Positions 1,363 to 63,671 of a stretch of DNA of 64,000 nt are shown in pieces (within the stretch, counting starts at the first letter, position 1; the number at the start of each line of letters is the position of its first letter). The stretch comes from Scyliorhinus canicula (lineage: Eukaryota): positions 5,766,001-5,830,000 of the forward strand of contig NC_052168.1 in NCBI RefSeq assembly GCF_902713615.1, given 5' to 3'. The notes under the pieces are model-generated. The model saw only the letters and a list, made by a program, of their open reading frames with translations, searched no databases and was not told the DNA's origin. Position numbers and translations under genes: made by a program.

Positions 1363-4220
<2,858 letters not shown>

Positions 4221-4258
4221 CCTCACTATTATTACTCACTGTCACCAAAATGTTGTAG

Positions 4259-4500
4259 AACTGACCCTTCCCACCACAAGCTCTTGTATTTATACAACTG
4301 GGACATCCTGCATTCAGACTGGGAATGACATCACCAATGATGATTGACAATTCCTGATAGCCAATCAGGAACCGGCCATTCCAGGCACCAATTAACCAAT
4401 GAGAGGTTTGGGGGGGGGGGGGGGGGGGCGAGACCCACAGCCAATCAGAGTTTTGGAATCCGGACCAGGTTGGAAGATTCATCTCGATGATGTCACTGCT
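4259..4500 (-). promoter_or_regulatory. Core promoter of copy 1 (Inr, TATA, TGACATCA, five CCAAT boxes)
   Basis: Initiator TCAGTT 4259-4264; TATAAA 4289-4294; TGACATCA 4326-4333; CCAAT at 4334, 4361, 4388, 4396, 4441; second TGATGTCA near 4488. Conserved upstream of all intact copies. Confidence 0.85.
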
Positions 4501-4817
4501 TTTACTTTCCTTGACCTTCTTCAGATGTGAAAATGTCTCGTTGTTGAACTCTCCCATTTTAACTCAATGATAATTGGTTCCTTTTGCTGAAGTGGGTTTT
4601 CATAACCTGGACAAGTTTGTTACTGGCCAGGAGCAGTGAAGCTGATACAATATTCAAACAATCAGGTCACCTTGAGGGAATTTCCTAACCAACCACTGGA
4701 CAGGGAAATGGAATTGTGGGAATGGGAGGGGGGAACATCACTGAATCCAATGTCATCCACGGACACGTCTCCATTTACTGTGTTTGGGGACAGGCTGGAA
4801 GGAGCAGCTATTCCTGC

Positions 4818-6219
4818 TCGTATAATCCAGGGAACTACAGGCCGATGAGCCTTACATAAGTGGTAGGGAAATTACTGGAGAGAATTCTTCGAGACAGGAT
4901 CTACTCCCAGGAGATGGACGTTTTAGTGAGAGGCAGCACGGTTTTGTGAAGGGGAGGTCGTGTCTCACTAACTTGATAGAGTTTTTCGAAGCGGTCACAA
5001 AGATGATTAATGCAGGTAGTGCAGTGGATGTTGTCTATATGGACTTCAGTAAGGCCTTTGACAAGGTCCCTCATGGCAGACCTGTTCAAAAGGTGAAGTC
5101 ACACGGGATCAGGGGTGAGCTGGCAAGATGGATACAGAACTGGCTCGGTCATAGATGGCAGTGAGTAGCAATGGAAGGGTGCTTTTCTGATTGGAGGGCT
5201 GTGACTAGTGATGGCCGGCAGGGATCAGTGCTGGGACCTTTGCTGTTCGTAGTATATTTCAATGATTCGGAGGAAAATGTAACTGGTCTGATTAGTAAGT
5301 TTGCAGACGACACAAAGATTGGTGGAATTGCGGATAGCGATGAGGACTGTCAGAGGATACAGCAGGATTTAGATCTTTTGGAGACTTGGGCGGAGAGGTG
5401 GCAGATGGAGTTTAATCCGGACAAATGTGAGGTCATGCATTTTGGAAGGTCTAATGCAGGTAGGAAATATACAATGAATGGTAGAACCCTCAAGAGTATT
5501 GACAGTCAGAGCGATCTTGGTGTACAGGTCTACAGGTCACTGAAAGGGGCAACACAGGTGGAGAAGGTAGTCAAGAAGGCATACGGCATGCTTGCCTTTA
5601 TTGGCCAGGGCATTGAGTATAAGAATTAGCAAATCATGTTGCAGCTGTATAGAACCTTAGTTAGGCCACACTTGGAGTACAGTGTTCAATTCTGGTCGCC
5701 ACACTACCAGAAAGATGTGGAGGCTTTAGAGAGGGTGCAGAAGAGATTTACCAGGATGTTGCCTGGTATGGAGGGCATTAGCTATGAGGAGCGGTTGAAT
5801 GAACTCGGTATGTTCTCACTGGAACGACGAAGGTTGAGGGGCGACCTGATAGAGGTCTACAAAATTATGAGGGGCATAGACAGAGTGGATAGTCAGAGGC
5901 TTTTTCCCAGGGCAGAGGGGTAAATTACTAGAGGGCATAGGTTTAAGGTGCGAGGGGCAAGGTTTAGAGGAGATGTATGAGGCAAGTTTTTTTACACAGA
6001 GGGTAGTGGGTGCCTGGAACTCACTGCCGGAGGAGGTGGTGGAAGCAGGGACGATAGTGACATTTAAGGGACATCTTGACAAATACATGAATAGGATGGG
6101 AATAGAGGGATACGCACCCCGGAAGTGAGAACATTTTAGTTTAGACGGGCAGCATGGTAGGCACAGGCTTGGAGGGCTGAAGGGCCTGTTCCTGTGCTGT
6201 ACTTTTCTTTTTTCTTTGT
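4818..6219 (+). mobile_element. 5'-truncated CR1-type LINE (dead RT)
   Basis: GRSCLTNL, VDVVYMDFSKAFDKVPH, QGSVLGPLLF, SKFADDTK, RPHLEYSVQFWSP, RRLRGDLIEVYK; internal stops; 3' tail shared with SINEs. Confidence 0.95.
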
Positions 6220-8064: not shown

Positions 8065-10956
<2,892 letters not shown>

Positions 10957-10994
10957 CCTCACTATTATTACTCACTGTCACCAAAATGTTGTAG

Positions 10995-11230
10995 AACTGA
11001 CCCTTCCCACCACAAGCTCTTGTATTTATACAACTGGGACATCCTGCATTCAGACTGGGAATGACATCACCAATGATGATTGACAATTCCTGATAGCCAA
11101 TCAGGAACCGGCCATTCCAGGCACCAATTAACCAATGAGAGGTTTGGGGGGGGGGGGCGAGACCCACAGCCAATCAGAGTTTTGGAATCCGGACCAGGTT
11201 GGAAGATTCATCTCGATGATGTCACTGCTT
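10995..11230 (-). promoter_or_regulatory. Core promoter of copy 2
   Basis: Identical by eye to the copy 1 promoter except poly-G length; TATAAA 11025-11030. Confidence 0.85.
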
Positions 11231-14727: not shown

Positions 14728-19234
<4,507 letters not shown>

Positions 19235-19273
19235 TCTCACTTTGCCTGTTCACAATCACCTAGACTGTTTTAG

Positions 19274-19480
19274 AACTGACCCTTCCTAACACAAGCCTTT
19301 GTATTTATACAATTGGGACATCCTGCATTCAAACCAATGATGATTGACAATCCCTGATAGCCAATCAGGAATCTGCCAGGAACCAGCATCAATTAACAAA
19401 GGGGGGGGGGGGGGGGGGGGGGGTGAGACCCAGAGCCAATCAGAGTTTTGGAATCCAGACCTGGTCGATGATGTCACTGC
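19274..19480 (-). promoter_or_regulatory. Core promoter of copy 3 (proximal TGACATCA deleted)
   Basis: TATAAA 19304-19309; Inr and CCAAT boxes retained; ~15-bp deletion removes the proximal TGACATCA. Confidence 0.8.
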
Positions 19481-19790
19481 TTTTACTTTCCTTGACCTTT
19501 TGCAGATGTGAAAATGCCTCGTTGTTGAACTCCCCCATTTTAACTCAATGATAATTGGTTCCTTTTGCTGGAGTGGGTTTTCATAACCTGGACAAGTTTG
19601 TTACTGGCCAGGAGCAGTGACCTTTTATAGGGTCGCACTACTCTAATTTTTATGTGTTTTGGTTTTCTTTTTTATTATTTTAGTTTTTTTCGTGTGTGTT
19701 TTTTCTCGTGGATTTTATGACCTGCATGCTTATCTCCACGTGCAGGATTAGGCCAGCATCCGCCATTGACACAATGCCGGGTGTGATAAT

Positions 19791-20137: not shown

Positions 20138-21125
20138 AACCAAGCAAAGGAACATAAAGTAACTGATGGATAAAACAAAACAGCGAGTGGACAACAGCCC
20201 AAAAAGAACGAGAAAGGAAACAAAAACTTATCAAAAACCCGTCAAATTAAAGTGTGAAAATCGGGTTCCATGAGGCAATCCAACCCCTGCAGTGCCCACC
20301 GAGCACGGAAGGCTTCGAGTGTGCCCGTGGACACCGCATGCTCCCTCTCCAGGGACAACCGGCCGTGAACGAGGCCGCGGAAGGTGGGCAGACTGTCAGG
20401 CTGGACGATCCCCTTGGTCGCCCGCTGCCTGGACCAATAAATGGCAAGTTTGGCCGAGCCCAGGAGCAGGTTCACGAGGAGGTCCTCCGCCTTCCCCACC
20501 CCTCTCCGCACCGGATGTCTGTAGTTCAGGAGCGTGGGGCTGAAGTGCAAACAAAACCTCAACAACAACGTCGTCAAGAAATCAAAGAGGGAGTGCAGCC
20601 CAGGACAGACAACATAAACCTGCTCCACGGTCTCCACCGGGCCGTAAAAGAGGCAGGTCTCTGGGGAGGCCGCGAAGTGATAAACTCTGTGATTGGACGG
20701 TACTGCCATGCGCAGCACCCTCCACACCAGGTCCCCTAGTTTTATGGGGAGGACACCTCCGTAGAGGGGCCCACAGCAGGGACCTCCTCCGCCGCACGGC
20801 AGCGAGACATGCCAAGGCGTGTCCGGGCGGCGGGCAAGGGCAAGGAGGTGGAAGGTGTGCAACAGCAGGCCGTACAGGAAACCACTCCGTGCAGTGCGAA
20901 AAGGCACGAAGGGTATTTCCGCGAGGCTGCTGGGGCTGTGGGGCACCAGCACCTGGGGTGGGTTCCGGGGTTTGGGACCAATGTGGAGTTCCGTCCGAGC
21001 AGGGGTCCGCTCAGACGGGATGCCACCGCACAACCCCACCGTCCCGAGCCCGTGTGCCCACGGGGCCGCGCACCGGACAGACACGGCTCCGCGCCTGGCA
21101 AGCTCGTAGGGTGTCATCCAGCCTG

Positions 21126-21950
21126 CTCCTCCGCCACCCAGCACGTCCCCGATCCTGGTCACCCCAGCATCCACAGCCCGCTCCTCTGCCACCCAGCACG
21201 TCCCCGATCCAGGTCACCCCAGCATCCACAGCCCGCCCCTCCGCCACCCAGCACGTCCCCGATCCTGGTCACCCCAGCATCCACAGCCCGCCCCTCCGCC
21301 ACCCAGCACGTCCCCGATCCTGGTCACCCCAGCATCCACAGCCCGCCCCTCCGCCACCCAGCACGTCCCCGATCCTGGTCACCCCAGCATCCACAGCCCG
21401 CCCCTCCGCCACCCAGCACGTCCCCGATCCAGGTCACCCCAGCATCCACAGCCCGCCCCTCCGCCACCCAGCACGTACCCGATCCAGGTCACCCCAGCAT
21501 CCACAGCCCGCCCCTCCGCCACCCAGCACGTCCCCGATCCTGGTCACCCCAGCATCCACAGCCCGCCCCTCCGCCACCCAGCACGTACCCGATCCAGGTC
21601 ACCCCAGCATCCAAAGCCCGCCCCTCCGCCACCCAGCACGTCCCCGATCCTGGTCACCCCAGCATCCACAGCCCGCTCCTCCGCCACCCAGCACGTCCTC
21701 GATCCAGGTCACCCCAGCATCCACAGCCCGCCCCTCCGCCACCCAGCACGTCCCCGATCCTGGTCACCCCAGCATCCACAGCCCGCCCCTCCGCCACCCA
21801 GCACGTCCCCGATCCAGGTCACCCCAGCATCCACAGCCCGCTCCTCCGCCAGCCAGCACGTCCCCGATCCTGGTCACCCCAGCATCCACAGCCCGCCCCT
21901 CCGCCACCCAGCACGTCCCCGATCCTGGTCACCCCAGCATCCACAGCCCG
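21126..21950. repeat. 55-bp GC-rich minisatellite, 15 copies
   Basis: GATCC(T/A)GGTC recurs every 55 bp from 21151 to 21921; unit CCTCCGCCACCCAGCACGTCCCCGATCCTGGTCACCCCAGCATCCACAGCCCGCY. Confidence 0.97.
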
Positions 21951-24339: not shown

Positions 24340-27217
<2,878 letters not shown>

Positions 27218-27249
27218 CTTCACTGCTACTATCACCTAGAGAGTTCTAG

Positions 27250-27485
27250 AACTGACCCTGCCCAACACAAGCTCTTGTATTTATACAACTGGGACATCCT
27301 GCAATCAAACAGGGAATGACATCACCAATGATGATTGACAATTCCTGATAGCCAATCAGGAATCGACCATTAGTCCGGGCACCAATTAAATGAGAGGGGG
27401 CGTGGGGAGGATTGAGACCCAGAGCCAATCAGAGCTTTGGAATCCAGACCAGGTTTGGGAGATTCAGCTTAATGATGTCAGTGCT
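27250..27485 (-). promoter_or_regulatory. Core promoter of copy 4
   Basis: TATAAA 27280-27285, Inr 27250-27255, TGACATCA and CCAAT boxes as in the other copies. Confidence 0.83.
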
Positions 27486-32760: not shown

Positions 32761-34719
<1,959 letters not shown>

Positions 34720-34743
34720 TCAATGTTACTGAGAATGTTCACA

Positions 34744-34885
34744 AACTGACCCTTCCCAACACAAGCTCTTGTATTTATACAACTGGGACATCCTGCATTC
34801 AAACAAGGAATGACATCACCAATGATGATTGACAATCCCCGATAGCCAATCAGGAATCTGACATGAACCAGCACCAATTAACAAA
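34744..34885 (-). promoter_or_regulatory. Core promoter of copy 5 (distal CCAAT displaced)
   Basis: TATAAA 34774-34779, Inr, TGACATCA, three CCAAT boxes; the distal motif CCCAGAGCCAATCAG reappears only at ~35795-35810. Confidence 0.82.
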
Positions 34886-35829
34886 GGGGCTGTGTGGGGG
34901 AGCTGGAGCTGTTTTCGGGGCCTTCCAGTGACCAGGCAGCGGGGGCGGAGCAGGTATCTGCACCACCACCACCTCCCTCTGGCCCGGGACCCCGGGAGGA
35001 GCCTGAGAAGGTCCCGCCTGTCGATGATCCCTGTGGCAGGATCAAGGCAGCCCCTGAGTTGGTTGTTGGGTCCATGTTGCCCGCCGCACTCAGTGTGGTG
35101 GAGGATTCGGGCCTTGAGGGCGACTGTCCCACGACTGTCAGTTGTCCTGTGTCAGGAGTGGAGGGTGCACATGAAATGAAAAATGAAAATGAAAATCGCT
35201 TATTGTCACGAGTAGGCTTCAATGAAGTTACTGTGAAAAGCCCCTAGTCGCCACATTCCGGCGCCTGTCCGGGGAGGCTGGTACAGGAATCGAACCATCG
35301 CCGCTGGCCTGCTTGGTCTGCTGTAAAAGCCAGCGATTTAGCCGAGTGAGCTAAACCAGCTCCCATGATGCTCTCTGCAGTCGTACCCGACACTGTGTCA
35401 CCCCTCACCCCCTCTGGGGGTCTCCCTGAACCTGGCACATCATAATTGGTTCCTTTGTTATTCTGCCTCCATAGATAGTTCAGGCAGTTCCCTAATGGGC
35501 CCCCCTTCACCAACACCCCGACTCCCTCCCTCCCCACCACCCTCCTTTCCCCCCTCTCCCAACCACCCCATCTTCCTTTCCCTTCTGTCGGTACAGGGGC
35601 GAGGGTGCCATTTGTTTTTTGTACAACTGTGTTGTGAACTGTTTTAATAACCAGAATATCCGACCCCCCCTCCCCGTATGTTGGTACTGAGGGGAGGGTA
35701 CCCTGTTTCTCCAATGCAAAATTAGTGTTTGTACCATTTGGCCTTGTATACATTTTTTACTGTTTTAATAAAAAGTTATGGGGTAAGGACAAAACCCAGA
35801 GCCAATCAGCCAATTCAAAAATTATCAGA

Positions 35830-36240
35830 GTGATTATGTCACTCGGAGTTTCAGAAATCCTCTGGTCCGTGATCCATGCCTATGTGACGTGTTATAGGCT
35901 GTACTCCCTTTTTGGTTTTCTGACGACTGTTGTTGAGGTGCTCTTTGAACTTCAGCCCCACACTCCTGACCTACGGGCACCCGGTGGGGAGAGGGGCGGG
36001 CAAGCTGGAGGGCCTCCTCGCGAACCTGCTCCTGGGCCTTGGCGAAACTCGCCATAAACAGGCCCATGCAAAGGGCAGCCAAGGTGGCCGTCAGGCCGGG
36101 CTGTCTGCCCCTTATCCGCGGCCACATTCATGGCCGGATGTCCCTGGAAAGAGAACATGCGATGTCCATGGGCACCATCGAGGCCCACAGTGATCAGTGG
36201 GCACCTCAGGGGTTGGGGTGATTTATTGACCCCCTCAATC
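35830..36240 (+). mobile_element. Tx1-like LINE ORF2 3' fragment
   Basis: FSPTLLTYGHPV, LLANLLLG, AKLAIN, RMSLEREHA, QWAPQG match the 20242-21192 ORF. Confidence 0.8.
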
Positions 36241-36420
36241 TTTGATTTGATTTGATATGATTTATTGTCACAGGTGCCGAAGTACAGTGAAAAGTATTTT
36301 TCTGCGGCCGAGGAACGTACACAGTACGTACATAATAGACACAGGAATAATCAACATTGACAAATGGTACATCGACAAAACAGTGATTGGTTCCAGTGGG
36401 GAACAAGGGGCCAAACAAAG

Positions 36421-36674
36421 TGATGCACCATCGATTGCACGTGAGGCGAGTGATTTACCAAAGTCAGGCTTTAATTAACTAGAACACAGCCTGGCGATCG
36501 TCTACAGTGGAAAGGGACGATCGTCAGGCTTCTGAGCATTTATACCTCGTTGATAGAGGCGTGGTTAACTCAGCCTCTCGGCCAATCGGTCGAGAGGCAC
36601 ATGACCGACCAGGGCCAATGGTAAGCCGACGTTCTGGCCCAATGGCAGACGAGTATGCAGATCATATCATCACA
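36421..36674. mobile_element. Solo LTR (254 bp) nested in a LINE 3' tail
   Basis: TG...CA termini, 5-bp TSD CAAAG. Confidence 0.8.
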
Positions 36675-37554
36675 CAAAGCAAATACATGAGCACTCTCAT
36701 TTGATATTTTTATGTTTCTGTTGAGCTATGTTATGTTGTGCCCCTATCAGGAGTGGCCCTTTCTGCCTTGTCCCTCAGCTTGTTTCCTTTCTTATATTTG
36801 GTTGACCTCAGTAACCAGCTTTCACGAAGCATCTATAATAGATTAATTACCCAATGGTTGAAAGGGAACTGTCTGTGCCAGATTTATGAGAAAACGTGAA
36901 TCAAATTGGATTCTGGGAAGGGAGAAAACAGTCGCTCTTCCCACGGTGCAGGAGGTCTGAGTGTGGTTGATGGTGAGTGTCTTCGCCATGATACCCACTT
37001 GTGAAATGGAAGGCAGGTAATTGGGCAAATGATCCCATTTTAAGCTTATGGTTGATTTTTTTTTTTATTCGTTCATGGCATTGCCGGCTGTGCCCACATA
37101 TATTGCCCATCCCTGAAGGCATTTAAGAGTCAACCACATTGCTGTGGGTCTGGAGTCACATGCAGGCCAGACCGGGTAAGGACGGCAGATTTCCTTCCCT
37201 AAAGGACACGAGTGAACGAGGTGGGTTTTTACGACAATCGACAATGGGCATCATTAGACTTTAAATTCCGATTCTTTTATTGAATTCAAATTTCACCACT
37301 GCAGTGGCGGGATTGGAACCTGGGTCCCGCAAGTATTATTCTGGGTCTCAGGTTTACTAGTCCAGTGACAATACCACTCCACCACCGCCTCCCTATAATG
37401 AAAAATTATGTTCGAGTGCGGCAAAAGACCATATTGAGCTTGTACAGAATGCATTGGAACTGGTCTGCTCTGACACAATCAGTTTCAAAGAATTCAGAAA
37501 AAAAATGAATTGCAGAGACTTTAATTTCACCTCAGCCCATTAATTGAAACCTAG

Positions 37555-38287
37555 GGGGATTCTCTGACCCCCCACCGGGTCGGAGAATCGCCGGGGGGCC
37601 GGCATGAATCCGGCCCCCGCCGTCTCCCGAAGTCTCCGGCACCAGGGATTCGGCGGTGGGCGGGAATCGGTCCGCGCCTGTCGGCGGGCCCGCCCCCCCC
37701 CCCCCCCCCCCGGCGATTCTCCGGCCCGCGATGGGCCGAAGTCCCGCCACTGTCATGCCTCTCCCGCCGACGTGGATCAAACCACCTCCCTTACCGACGG
37801 GACCAGGCGGCGTGGGCGGGCTCCGGGGTCCTGGCCGGGGGGGGGGGGGGGGCGATCTGGCCCCGGGGGATACCCCCACGGTGGCCTGGCCCGCAATCGG
37901 GGCCCACCGATCGGCGGGCGGGCCTGTGCCGTGGGGGCACTCATTTCCTTCCGCGTTGGCCAGAGTCTTCATGATGGCGGACGCGGAAGTGACCCCCTCC
38001 CCTGCGCATGCGCGGTGATGACGCAGCCGCTGACGCTCCGGCGCATGCGCGGACTTCCGGCGGCCGGCGAACTCCCTTCGGCCCCGGCTGGCGTGGCGCC
38101 AAAGGCCATTCCCGTCGGCCGGCAGGGCGCTAACCACTCCGGCGTGGGCCTAGCCCCTCAAGGTTAGGGCTTGGCCCCTAAAGGTGCGGAGACTTCCGCA
38201 CCTTTGGGGAGGCCCGATGCCGGAGTGATTCACACAACTCCATCCCGCCGGGACCCCCCGCCCGCCGGATAGGGGAGAATCCCGCCC
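37555..38287. mobile_element. GC-rich non-autonomous DNA element (MITE-like, possibly PIF/Harbinger)
   Basis: Imperfect terminal inverted repeats GGGGATTCTC / GGAGAATCCCGCCC, internal inverted repeats, TAG/CAG flanks, CpG-rich against an AT-rich background. Confidence 0.65.
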
Positions 38288-38409
38288 CAGGTGTTGAGGT
38301 GGAGAATGGGTAATGTATCTCCCATGAAGCTGCCGTTTGACTCCTCTCCTGGCTGTAAATGAGATTCAGGTCTGATCCCACTCTCCCTTTCTATCGTGAC
38401 TCTCCACAG

Positions 38410-39789
<1,380 letters not shown>

Positions 39790-40790
39790 TCAGTCCTGAA
39801 GGAGAATGATTCCTTCTTAGGCTCTTGATGTGAAGTATAACTGGATAGACCGAGTTTGCATCCTGCAAGGTTGTAGCAACACCCCAATGATGCAATGGTT
39901 CATGGGATTCAAGCCTGTGAAATTCATCGATCCTTCTGACATTGCCATTTATTCTGTAATCAGGACCATGTGATGGTGTAATCTTCATTCTGTAACTTTG
40001 ATTACGATTGGCATTCGCAGCAACAATCACATTCAACTGTCCTGTGCTGAGGCCAGGTGCTGAAGCATAAGAGCAACAACTGCTGAACATAAAGCTTTCC
40101 TGTGGTTTATTATTACCCATATCATGAAAATGAAAATCGCTTATTGTCACAAGTAGGCTTCAAATGAAGTTACTGTGAAAAGCCCCTATCAGAGTAGGAA
40201 TTCAAAACCTTGCATTTATTGCTTGGCCTCCACAGTTCTCAGAACAGCTGGGTGGGAGCAGCAAGAGGACCTACTTTGTTGGGCATTCTGAAGGACGTAT
40301 GACATTAAATTACAACGGAGGTGTTGTGGCAGATGAACAAAGGTTTGGTTAAAGAGGCAGGTGCGTAGAGGAAGGTGACTGAAGAAACAACCACCAGTGG
40401 TGGAGCTGGATGAACACAGGATGGAATTGAAGCGTTCAGATCCTGAAGGATTTGAGGTGATTATAAAGATTTGTGGAGTCCCTGCAGTGCAGAGACGACT
40501 ATTCAGCCCACCAAGTCTGCACCGAGCCTCTGAAAGAGCTCCTACCTTGGCCCATTTCGCTGTAACCCCACCTAACCTTTTGGACATTAAGGGGCAATTT
40601 AGCATGGTCAATCTGCACATCTCTGGATTATGGGAGGAAACGGGTGCACCCGGAGGAAATGCACGCAGATACTGGGAGAACGTGCAAACTCCGCACGGGA
40701 GGGGGGTTAGGCGGATTGGCCATGCTAAATTGCCCCTTAATTGGCAAACAAAATTGGTTGCTCTAAATTAGTTTTTAAAAAGCAGAGTTG

Positions 40791-41062
40791 GGGCAGCACG
40801 GTAGCATTGTGGATAGCACAATTGCTTCACAGCTCCAGGGTCTCAGGTTCAATTCCGACTTGGGTCACTGTCTGTTAGGTGGATTGGCCATGATAAATTG
40901 CCCATAGTGTCCAAAATTGCCCTTAGTGTTGGGTAGCGTTACTGGGCTATGCGGATAGGGTGTAGGTGTTGACCTTGGGTAGGGTGCTCTTTCCAAGAGC
41001 CGGTGTAGACTCAATGGGCCGAATGGCCTCCTTCTGCACTGTAAATTCTATGATCTATGATC
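40791..41062 (+). mobile_element. V-SINE (neighbours at ~40480-40700, 41555-41655)
   Basis: Head and tail match the family; internal deletion. Confidence 0.82.
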
Positions 41063-41924
41063 TGATGTTTTGCGTCCCTTTGATTCTTCTTCCGAGCTGA
41101 AGGAAGGGAGAGTGTGTTTGAATTCCCTTCAGTTCTGATGAAGAGCCAAAGGACTCACCGTTCACTGTTTTCTCTCCTTAACAGCTGCTGCCACACCTTG
41201 CGTTTTTCCAGCAATCCTTGTAAATTGTTCCAGATTCCAGCGTCCACACTATTTTCACTTTTTCGGTTGGTTGACCAGCTCAGCAACCCAGAATGCTCGG
41301 GGTAGCAGAACTTGCTGTGAGTTACACACAAGTAGCAGAATGGCCTCCACTTCAGATAGAAGAATGTGGGAGGGGGGAACCAGCCAGGAGCTCGCTGCAA
41401 TAGTCATGTCTGGAGGTAACGGAAATACGAAGGAAGGTTTCAGCAGCTCCTCTCTGGAAATGAATGTGATTGACTGGAGTTCACAGGGCTGGTACCTGGA
41501 GGGAACATTGTTTGGGGATAGAGCCAAAAGCAATGCCGTCAATCTGCCCCACAAGGGCAGCACGGTAGCACAGTGGTTAGCACAGTTCCCTCACAGCTCC
41601 AGGGTCCCAGGTTCGATTCCTGGCTTGGGTGCTTGAGTCTGCACGTTCTCCTCCCCTTGCCAACAATGAAGTCGAGGCATTTAGTTGAACCCTGCTCTGT
41701 GTGATGAAATTACCATTTCTAGGGATCCCACGTTCAAGTGCAAGGTGAAACATCCCATCATCAAATCCACGGCTGGAAAACTAAATCACTTTTGCATTGA
41801 GATCAGAGGTCAAGAGCAAACTTGGCGAGATCATGCAAAGCCACGTCAACAAAAGTAAGAAATTGTCATTCAGTTCAAATGAGAGCCTTAAACAAAGAGA
41901 CATTTTTACAGTCCAAGGAACCCA

Positions 41925-42140
41925 AAAGCAGTGACATCATCGAGATGAATCTCCCAACCTGGTCTGGATTCCAAAGCTCTGATTGGCTTCTCGCCCCCCC
42001 CCCCCCCACCCCCTCCCCCTCCCCCTCCCCCTCTTATTGGTAATTGGTGCCTGCAGAGATTGGTGATGTCATTCTCTGTTTAAATGTAGGATGTCCCAGT
42101 TGTATAAATACAAGACCTTGTGTTGGGAAGGGTCAGTTCT
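41925..42140 (+). promoter_or_regulatory. Core promoter of copy 7
   Basis: TATAAA 42103-42108, Inr TCAGTT 42133-42138, TGATGTCA, ATTGG boxes; an internal deletion removes one CCAAT-containing segment. Confidence 0.83.
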
Positions 42141-42162
42141 GGAACGTTTGAAGCAACATTGA

Positions 42163-45468
<3,306 letters not shown>

Positions 45469-51868: not shown

Positions 51869-52124
51869 ATTGAGGTGTTGAAGATGATGTTGAAAATGAA
51901 ATTGTTTGTTTTTTATAATGTTGGGATCAAATAAATATTTCAAATTGGAGATTATGGGTTTTTGTTAGGAGATGAAGGCATATAGAACCCAAGTGGACAC
52001 GGCACTAAAATTCTGAGCAGCCATGATAATTGAATGGCAGAACAGGCTTGATGGGCTGAATGGCCTCTTCCTGTTCCTATATTGCAATCACAGACTGATC
52101 ATCCAAATATCCTTACATTCTAAT

Positions 52125-52310
52125 GCTCTGATTGGCTCTGGATGTCGCACTCCACCCCCTCTCCTTTGTTAATTGATGCATGGATTCATGGCCGATTTCT
52201 GATTGGCTATCAGGGATTGTCAATCATCATTGGTGATGTCATTCCCTGTTTGAATGCAGGATGTCCCAGTTGTATAAATACAAGAGCTCCTGCTGGGAAG
52301 GGTCATTTCC
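52125..52310 (+). promoter_or_regulatory. Core promoter of copy 8
   Basis: TATAAA 52273-52278, Inr TCATTT 52303-52308, ATTGG boxes, TGATGTCA. Confidence 0.83.
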
Positions 52311-52347
52311 AGAACTTTCTAGGTGATAGTGATCAAGAACAGTGAAG

Positions 52348-55659
<3,312 letters not shown>

Positions 55660-59660: not shown

Positions 59661-59719
59661 CCTCTTCCTGTTCCTATATTGCAATCACAGACTGATCATC
59701 CAAATCTGCCAGCTTTCCA

Positions 59720-59906
59720 AAGCTCTTATTGGCTCTGGATGTCGCACTCCACCCCCTCTCCTTTGTTAATTGGTGCCGGGATTCATGGCCGATTTCTGAT
59801 TGGCTATCATGGATTGTCAATCATCATTGGTGATGTCATTCCCTGTTTGAATGCAGGATGTCCCTGTTGTATAAATACAAGAGCTCCTGCTGGGAAGGGT
59901 CATTTC
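59720..59906 (+). promoter_or_regulatory. Core promoter of copy 9
   Basis: TATAAA 59870-59875, Inr TCATTT 59900-59905; near-identical to the copy 8 promoter. Confidence 0.83.
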
Positions 59907-59944
59907 CAGAACTTTCTAGGTGATAGTGATCAAGAACAGTGAAG

Positions 59945-63671
<3,727 letters not shown>

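Follow-up and report, generated by a model that had tools for sequence, protein, structure and literature searches.

All eight intact ferritin genes in a 64-kb stretch of Scyliorhinus canicula DNA (the whole of the sequence analysed, referred to as the window) are free of an iron-responsive element (IRE), and the observation of an IRE-free array is confirmed. The array is probably part of a shark-specific tandem amplification of H-type ferritin genes, in which the IRE was lost by decay and output is set by transcription and gene dosage. Canonical vertebrate cytosolic ferritin mRNAs carry a 5' IRE and are repressed by IRP1/2. In textbooks, this element exemplifies translational control; it is taken to be universal among the cytosolic ferritins of vertebrates, and the exceptions known to us are retrogenes. 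Here, intron-bearing, ferroxidase-competent genes would have lost the IRE, kept an ancient promoter and then (or thereby) been amplified to hundreds of copies. Such genes offer a natural experiment on what the IRE is for and how ferritin is controlled without it, as well as on a possible selective advantage of escaping IRP repression, through egg provisioning or oocyte protection, in animals that are large-yolked and long-lived. They also raise the question of whether any IRE-regulated ferritin exists in cartilaginous fish.

A shark ferritin array and its ovary expression were already known from a preprint on the Greenland shark, and tandem ferritin expansion from the hadal snailfish. The positive control for the IRE search, the conservation of the promoter across species, the IRE relics and the loss of the element beyond the amplified H-type array are new. 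No description of IRE absence was found in the published literature on shark, elasmobranch or cartilaginous-fish ferritin and the IRE.

Organisation and coding capacity of the array

Ferritin genes were located by tblastn and blastn with copy 1 as the query, which yielded eight intact four-exon genes and one copy without exon 1. The array runs head-to-tail with one head-to-head junction, G1-G5 lying on the minus strand and G6p-G9 on the plus strand. G1 extends from its ATG at 4220 to its stop (1363..4220, minus strand; exons 4220-4119, 2842-2696, 1875-1750 and 1518-1363; 176 aa). Its promoter and predicted 42-nt leader (4221..4480, minus strand) contain TATAAA at 4294-4289, TCAGTT at 4264-4259, four inverted CCAAT boxes and TGATGTCA. 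The stretch flagged in the preliminary description (4221-4294) runs on the minus strand from the G1 TATAAA to the base preceding the ATG. The other minus-strand genes, each given with its promoter, are G2 (8065..11216; ATG 10956, stop 8065; TATAAA 11030-11025; leader 10998-10957), which is a recent duplicate of G1, G3 (14728..19494; ATG 19234; TATAAA 19309-19304; leader 19277-19235), G4 (24340..27477; ATG 27217; TATAAA 27285-27280; 36-nt leader 27253-27218) and G5 (32761..34964; ATG 34704; TATAAA 34779-34774; leader 34747-34705), whose C-terminus is slightly divergent (177 aa). On the plus strand, the truncated copy G6p (38359..39786; exons 2-4 only, without exon 1 and promoter) carries several substitutions and has lost its stop. 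It is followed, again with promoters included, by G7 (41918..45468; ATG 42178; TATAAA 42103-42108; leader 42135-42177), G8 (52088..55659; ATG 52348; TATAAA 52273-52278; TCATTT; leader 52305-52347) and G9 (59685..63671; ATG 59945; TATAAA 59870-59875; TCATTT; leader 59902-59944).

Several features between the genes were recorded. The orientation switches at 34705-42177, a GC-richer junction (0.50-0.53) that contains G6p. The latter is annotated as protein XP_038639888.1 (100% identity over the first exon, 98% over the last), the model of which starts at an ATG within the former intron 1 and continues beyond the lost stop. Between G3 and G4, at 21119-21950, 15 copies of a 55-bp unit (96% identity) form a GC-rich tandem repeat that accounts for a 65% GC spike in the composition profile. 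The region 4740-6130 (plus strand), between G1 and G2, resembles by eye a decayed non-LTR retrotransposon reverse transcriptase, with motifs such as YMDFSKAFDKVPH and with stops.

In the eight intact copies, the exons measure 102, 147, 126 and 156 nt and are separated by three introns, all in phase 0 and with GT-AG borders. Exon translations matched Pfam PF00210 (Ferritin; E 7.6e-12 for exon 2), and a paralogue that is 98% identical to G1 (P0125) matched the ferritin chain of PDB 1bg7 and the human H chain with E ~1e-88. The nearest solved structures are 1bg7 (titled 'Ferritin'), human H and bullfrog M. The ferroxidase-centre residues (E27, Y34, E61/E62, H65, E107 and Q141 in human H numbering) are kept in all eight translations, within the motifs ELY..Y, SHEEREH, MEKNVNQ and DEQVK (LEKNVNQ in G3, with the Glu retained), and the ferroxidase stretch is identical to 1bg7 in the alignment with that chain. 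The proteins (176-177 aa) are colinear with cytosolic H chains over residues 1-175, start with M(V/A)(S/A)QV(R/C)QNYH, keep Glu62 and have neither a presequence extension, nor a signal peptide, nor a 42-aa insertion. Pairwise dN/dS values among the intact copies are mostly 0.2-0.6, from small counts, and the intact reading frames are under purifying selection. In G7, the frame of exons 3 and 4 stays open through intron 3, so that a 137-aa read-through ORF results (45055-45465, plus strand). Products of a similar kind are entered as proteins in databases: two Logan-sourced sequences (P0083 and P0093) were rejected as transcript contigs, as they are genomic read-through ORFs from other species. 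Each of the shark proteins listed in the protein search maps to a single genome contig.

Promoters, leaders and the search for an IRE

Alignment and direct counting placed the start of TATAAA 32 bp ahead of the A in TCAGTT (TCATTT in G8 and G9) in each of the eight copies. From this geometry, leaders of 36-43 nt are predicted (42, 42, 43, 36, 43, 43, 43 and 43 nt for G1-G5 and G7-G9, respectively), in exact agreement with the preliminary description, which had given a distance of ~32 bp and the same range. On their upstream side, the TATA boxes are preceded by between three and five inverted CCAAT boxes, the TGATGTCA element and a C-rich tract. A homopolymer C tract of variable length (~12-20 C) is situated between the first two CCAAT boxes in G1 (at about 4400-4420), G2, G3 and G7, and the whale shark and sevengill shark have CCCCTCCCCCAC, which is GC/CACCC-box-like, at its position.

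The agreement of the eight copies is a matter of shared descent and does not represent eight independent events; independent support is provided by promoter conservation in other species. The region from -260 to -1, comprising promoter and leader, is conserved across three shark orders (catshark G7, whale shark and sevengill shark), and in this comparison non-coding conservation is limited to about this interval, the introns and the sequence farther upstream being unalignable. In an alignment of 15 sequences, long stretches spanning the CCAAT boxes, TGATGTCA, the TATA box and the first part of the leader are invariant. From chimaera to sharks, the core promoter motif GTATAAATACAAGAG is found in nearly identical form; together with inverted CCAAT boxes, it is present in the chimaera, sevengill shark and whale shark, the sawfish having the TATA core only. 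This conservation lends strong, if indirect, support to a start site at TCA(G/T)TT, and transcription very probably begins just downstream of the TATA/CCAAT promoter. The leader itself is conserved across elasmobranchs (GGTGATAGTGA and AGTGAAGATG in catshark, whale shark, sevengill shark and sawfish), which could mean that it holds another control element. No conserved ARE, MRE or HRE motif was found in the proximal 280 bp. An HSE-like TTCnnGAA at the predicted start site was dropped from consideration, being present in some copies only.

For the detection of IREs, the window was searched with the Rfam covariance models and with a SIREs-style motif scan (CAG[U/A]GN loop, 5-bp upper stem and C bulge), the two approaches that had been suggested in the preliminary description. 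IRE_I and IRE_II were absent from the 64-kb window on both strands, at the gathering score (34 bits for IRE_I, RF00037) as well as at E<=10 (cmscan), and a 161-nt Rfam scan around the flagged site was free of IREs, sub-threshold matches included. The motif scan returned zero sense-strand candidates near any copy. Its sole match with a 5/5 stem and a C bulge falls within poly-G sequence, antisense to G7-G9. As a positive control, the same Rfam search recovered IRE_I at 42.5 bits, 159-194 nt upstream of the ATGs of both bowfin M-ferritin genes, and the motif scan likewise recovered the bowfin element. The G1 and G2 leaders contain CAGTGA, but the flanks pair at 3/5 positions and the C bulge is absent. 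As a whole, the leaders are unstructured (MFE -3.6 to -10.6 kcal/mol, z >= -0.24) and fold no better than shuffled sequences. The 3'UTRs of the array copies are short, with AATAAA 109-119 nt past the stop (66 nt in G5), and contain no IRE; a CPE motif ahead of AATAAA was not found in them either. The preliminary description, according to which the family is intron-containing, amplified and IRE-free, with no C-bulge/CAGUGN hairpin in the eight leaders and none in those short 3'UTRs that it covered, is borne out on these points.

IRE relics and ferritin genes of other cartilaginous fishes

Related loci were fetched from the chimaera (L001), sevengill shark (clade B: L002, L008 and L009; clade A: L003; dispersed: L007), sawfish (L006) and whale shark (L010). 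Protein searches and cluster look-ups revealed a very large expansion of the family in sharks, where clusters at 90% identity contain 127-180 member sequences. In the tree, the genes of the window fall into a shark-wide clade B, to which a chimaera gene is sister, and a separate clade A is resolved. Members of clade A carry Glu62Lys, in Heptranchias together with His65Arg, and are L-like (P0085 and P0111; L003 8001-9756). Clade A also forms large clusters (43-76 member sequences), and its loss of ferroxidase residues is similar to that of mammalian L chains.

No IRE was detected at the gathering score or by motif scan in about 20 related genes from the chimaera, sawfish, whale shark and sevengill shark, including the sevengill clade A gene, both chimaera genes and all sawfish copies. 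IRE absence is not peculiar to the catshark array, and it may be the general state in cartilaginous fish. The genes found to be without the element span the H-type and the Glu62Lys L-like clades, amplified and dispersed copies, the chimaera, the sawfish and three shark orders. We nevertheless regard it as unlikely that the cartilaginous fishes gave up IRE/IRP control of ferritin as a class, with decayed relics as the only remains; if they did, promoter activity and copy number would be the sole controls on ferritin in one of the major lineages of vertebrates.

Relics of the element were found in the sevengill shark Heptranchias. The leaders of B2 and B8 contain GTTTC(T/G)TGCTTCAATAGAGTT, which matches 19-20 of the 21 nt of the IRE 5' arm and the start of the loop (local-alignment score 30-34 versus a shuffle maximum of 24.5-28, p<0.002), and B2 gave a sub-threshold Rfam score of 12.4 bits. 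The clade A gene keeps AGTGTTTGAAC, corresponding to the end of the loop and the 3' arm (score 32, p<0.002). In this relic, U replaces the loop C, the upper stem has a mismatch and the C bulge is absent, and there is no Rfam match at this position. In B7 and the dispersed copy, CAGTGG or TAGTGG is followed by TGTTTGAA, equivalent to loop and 3' arm. Since different copies keep different fragments, the pattern is that of independent decay of a once-shared element, and the position of the significant fragments in the sevengill leaders indicates that it decayed in place. The TATA-to-TCAGTT spacing is equal in B2 and the catshark, and a multiple alignment sets the catshark leader opposite the bowfin IRE. 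The catshark leaders themselves contain no significant remnant by local alignment to the IRE consensus (p 0.1-0.7); for these genes, we infer decay in place by way of the sevengill intermediates. An IRE-like 9-mer upstream of the TATA box in sevengill B6 (TTGCTTCAA, p=0.012) was discounted after multiple testing.

Two further observations concern the neighbourhood of these loci. In Heptranchias perlo, a gene with a zona-pellucida (ZP) domain adjoins copies of the ferritin array (L009 19034-20288), which is suggestive of an oocyte-related neighbourhood, though ZP domains are widespread. In the chimaera Callorhinchus milii, the two tandem ferritin genes are separated by a tRNA gene (50 bits; L001 9924-9995).

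Comparison with known ferritins and predicted mode of control

Canonical H/M ferritins (human FTH1, bullfrog H/M and bowfin) resemble the catshark genes in having four exons, ~176 aa, roughly >=70% identity, an intact ferroxidase centre and a promoter with TATA and CCAAT boxes. They differ in that they are single- or few-copy genes with a cap-proximal IRE (42.5 bits in the bowfin) in a 5'UTR of ~200 nt, whereas the catshark genes are tandemly amplified and have an IRE-free leader of ~40 nt. To our knowledge, FTMT and FTHL17 both lack an IRE, and FTHL17 is intronless. These two were named in the preliminary description as IRE-less, intronless retrogenes. For FTMT, the absence of introns agrees with the literature, which describes an intronless, processed-type gene without TATA or CCAAT box, while FTHL17 is expressed in spermatogonia and embryonic germ cells (PMC7760355). 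FTMT has a mitochondrial presequence and FTHL17 has lost ferroxidase activity (Glu62Lys), whereas the catshark copies have no presequence and keep Glu62. Unlike both, the shark genes retain three introns, the old promoter and the ferroxidase site, and their IRE appears to have been lost by decay in place.

The yolk ferritins of snails (Lymnaea and Biomphalaria) and schistosomes likewise lack an IRE, the somatic form having one; their expression in female reproductive tissue serves to provision the egg (PMC10799875, PMC1488847). They are, however, encoded by single genes of invertebrates. The snail protein carries a signal peptide for secretion and an insertion of 42 aa (PMC10799875), neither of which occurs in the shark proteins, whose N-terminus is of the normal cytosolic type. 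The hadal snailfish has a similar tandem amplification of an H-like ferritin, with 14 copies of fthl27 that are expressed in most tissues and for which a dosage response to oxidative stress has been proposed; this is a teleost, and the IRE status is not discussed (PMC10746142). For the Greenland shark, a preprint gives copy numbers of 179 for FTH1 and 155 for FTL, with some 80% of the copies belonging to three clusters that are syntenic in the white shark, and describes ovary-specific expression of the largest cluster; in the text consulted, IRE and promoter are not mentioned (bioRxiv 10.1101/2024.09.09.611499). The Greenland and white shark expansion very probably represents the same gene family and clusters as the catshark array. 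None of the IRE-less ferritins compared here (the yolk ferritins, FTMT and FTHL17) combines introns, ferroxidase competence and tandem amplification in a cytosolic ferritin of vertebrates.

In the mechanism proposed, each copy retains the ancestral four-exon structure and the old TATA/CCAAT/CRE-like promoter, and decay in place of the ancestral cap-proximal IRE would leave a short, unstructured leader of ~40 nt. Without the IRE, IRP1/2 would be unable to block ribosome loading (43S complex), and the unstructured leader would permit constitutive translation. The absence of the element argues that output would be set by promoter activity and gene copy number instead of cytosolic iron, and IRP-independent control by transcription and gene dosage appears to be the best reading of the sequence data. 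As to use, mass supply of ferritin to the ovary or oocyte may be put forward tentatively, with the expression statement of one preprint on another shark as the starting point. Oocyte provisioning or protection is favoured among possible uses because of the Greenland shark ovary expression, the ZP neighbour in Heptranchias and the precedent of the IRE-less snail and schistosome yolk ferritins. The preliminary description had argued from the missing IRE to a role other than housekeeping. This step is weakened, as the sevengill clade A, chimaera and sawfish genes are also IRE-free; the idea of a special role itself gains from the ovary-specific cluster described in the Greenland shark preprint.

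The same genes bear on an alternative in which IRE absence is general in cartilaginous-fish ferritins, housekeeping ones included, and the array is ordinary ferritin at high dosage. Every chondrichthyan ferritin gene examined is indeed without the element (clade B of four species, sevengill clade A and both chimaera genes), but these are ~30 genes in five species out of hundreds, and the Heptranchias relics suggest that IRE-bearing copies long outlasted the split of clades A and B, so that some may survive. As the main cluster is, moreover, described as ovary-specific rather than ubiquitous in the Greenland shark preprint, we consider this alternative doubtful. It is very unlikely that the array is largely silent duplicated DNA, with IRE loss reflecting relaxed constraint on dead copies. 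Although G6p is clearly degenerate and the whale shark and sawfish arrays include copies with stops or frameshifts, eight of the nine reading frames in the window are undamaged, no splice site or ferroxidase residue has been lost from them and dN/dS is mostly <0.6. In three shark orders, promoter and leader are conserved but introns are not, and expression of the cluster in the ovary is reported in the preprint.

The conservation of the leader between catshark, whale shark, sevengill shark and sawfish, together with the resemblance of the GGTGATAGTGA / AATAGTGAAG motif to a C-to-U version of the IRE loop, could also be taken to mean that the short leader carries a non-canonical element (e.g. 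the GGTGATAGTGA / AATAGTGAAG repeat) for iron-dependent or oocyte-specific translational control. This is highly improbable, given that hairpin, C bulge and stable fold are all absent, that the catshark leader lacks even a sub-threshold Rfam IRE match and that the conservation is equally compatible with promoter elements acting at the DNA level. Finally, canonical ferritin 5'UTRs measure about 150-250 nt (bowfin), which might point to transcription from farther upstream, or to a non-coding exon 1, as the source of a canonical IRE, a possibility singled out in the preliminary description as one that would overturn its claim. Since the array is head-to-tail with one head-to-head junction, the window covers the sequence upstream of every copy, and as no IRE is present on either strand of the 64 kb, such an exon is excluded within it. 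The TATA box of fixed spacing is conserved from chimaera to sharks, a pyrimidine-tract acceptor is absent before the ATG and conserved blocks are absent beyond -260, all of which makes this explanation scarcely credible. IRP-independent control by transcription and dosage remains the preferred reading.

A minor observation was made at the loci that served as the positive control. The IRE-bearing 'middle subunit' ferritin genes of Amia ocellicauda (L004 and L005) are flanked by genes encoding a tankyrase-binding C-terminal domain and a Rad9 domain. The human counterparts of these flanking genes lie at 11q12-13 near FTH1, which hints that the bowfin genes mark the FTH1 locus.
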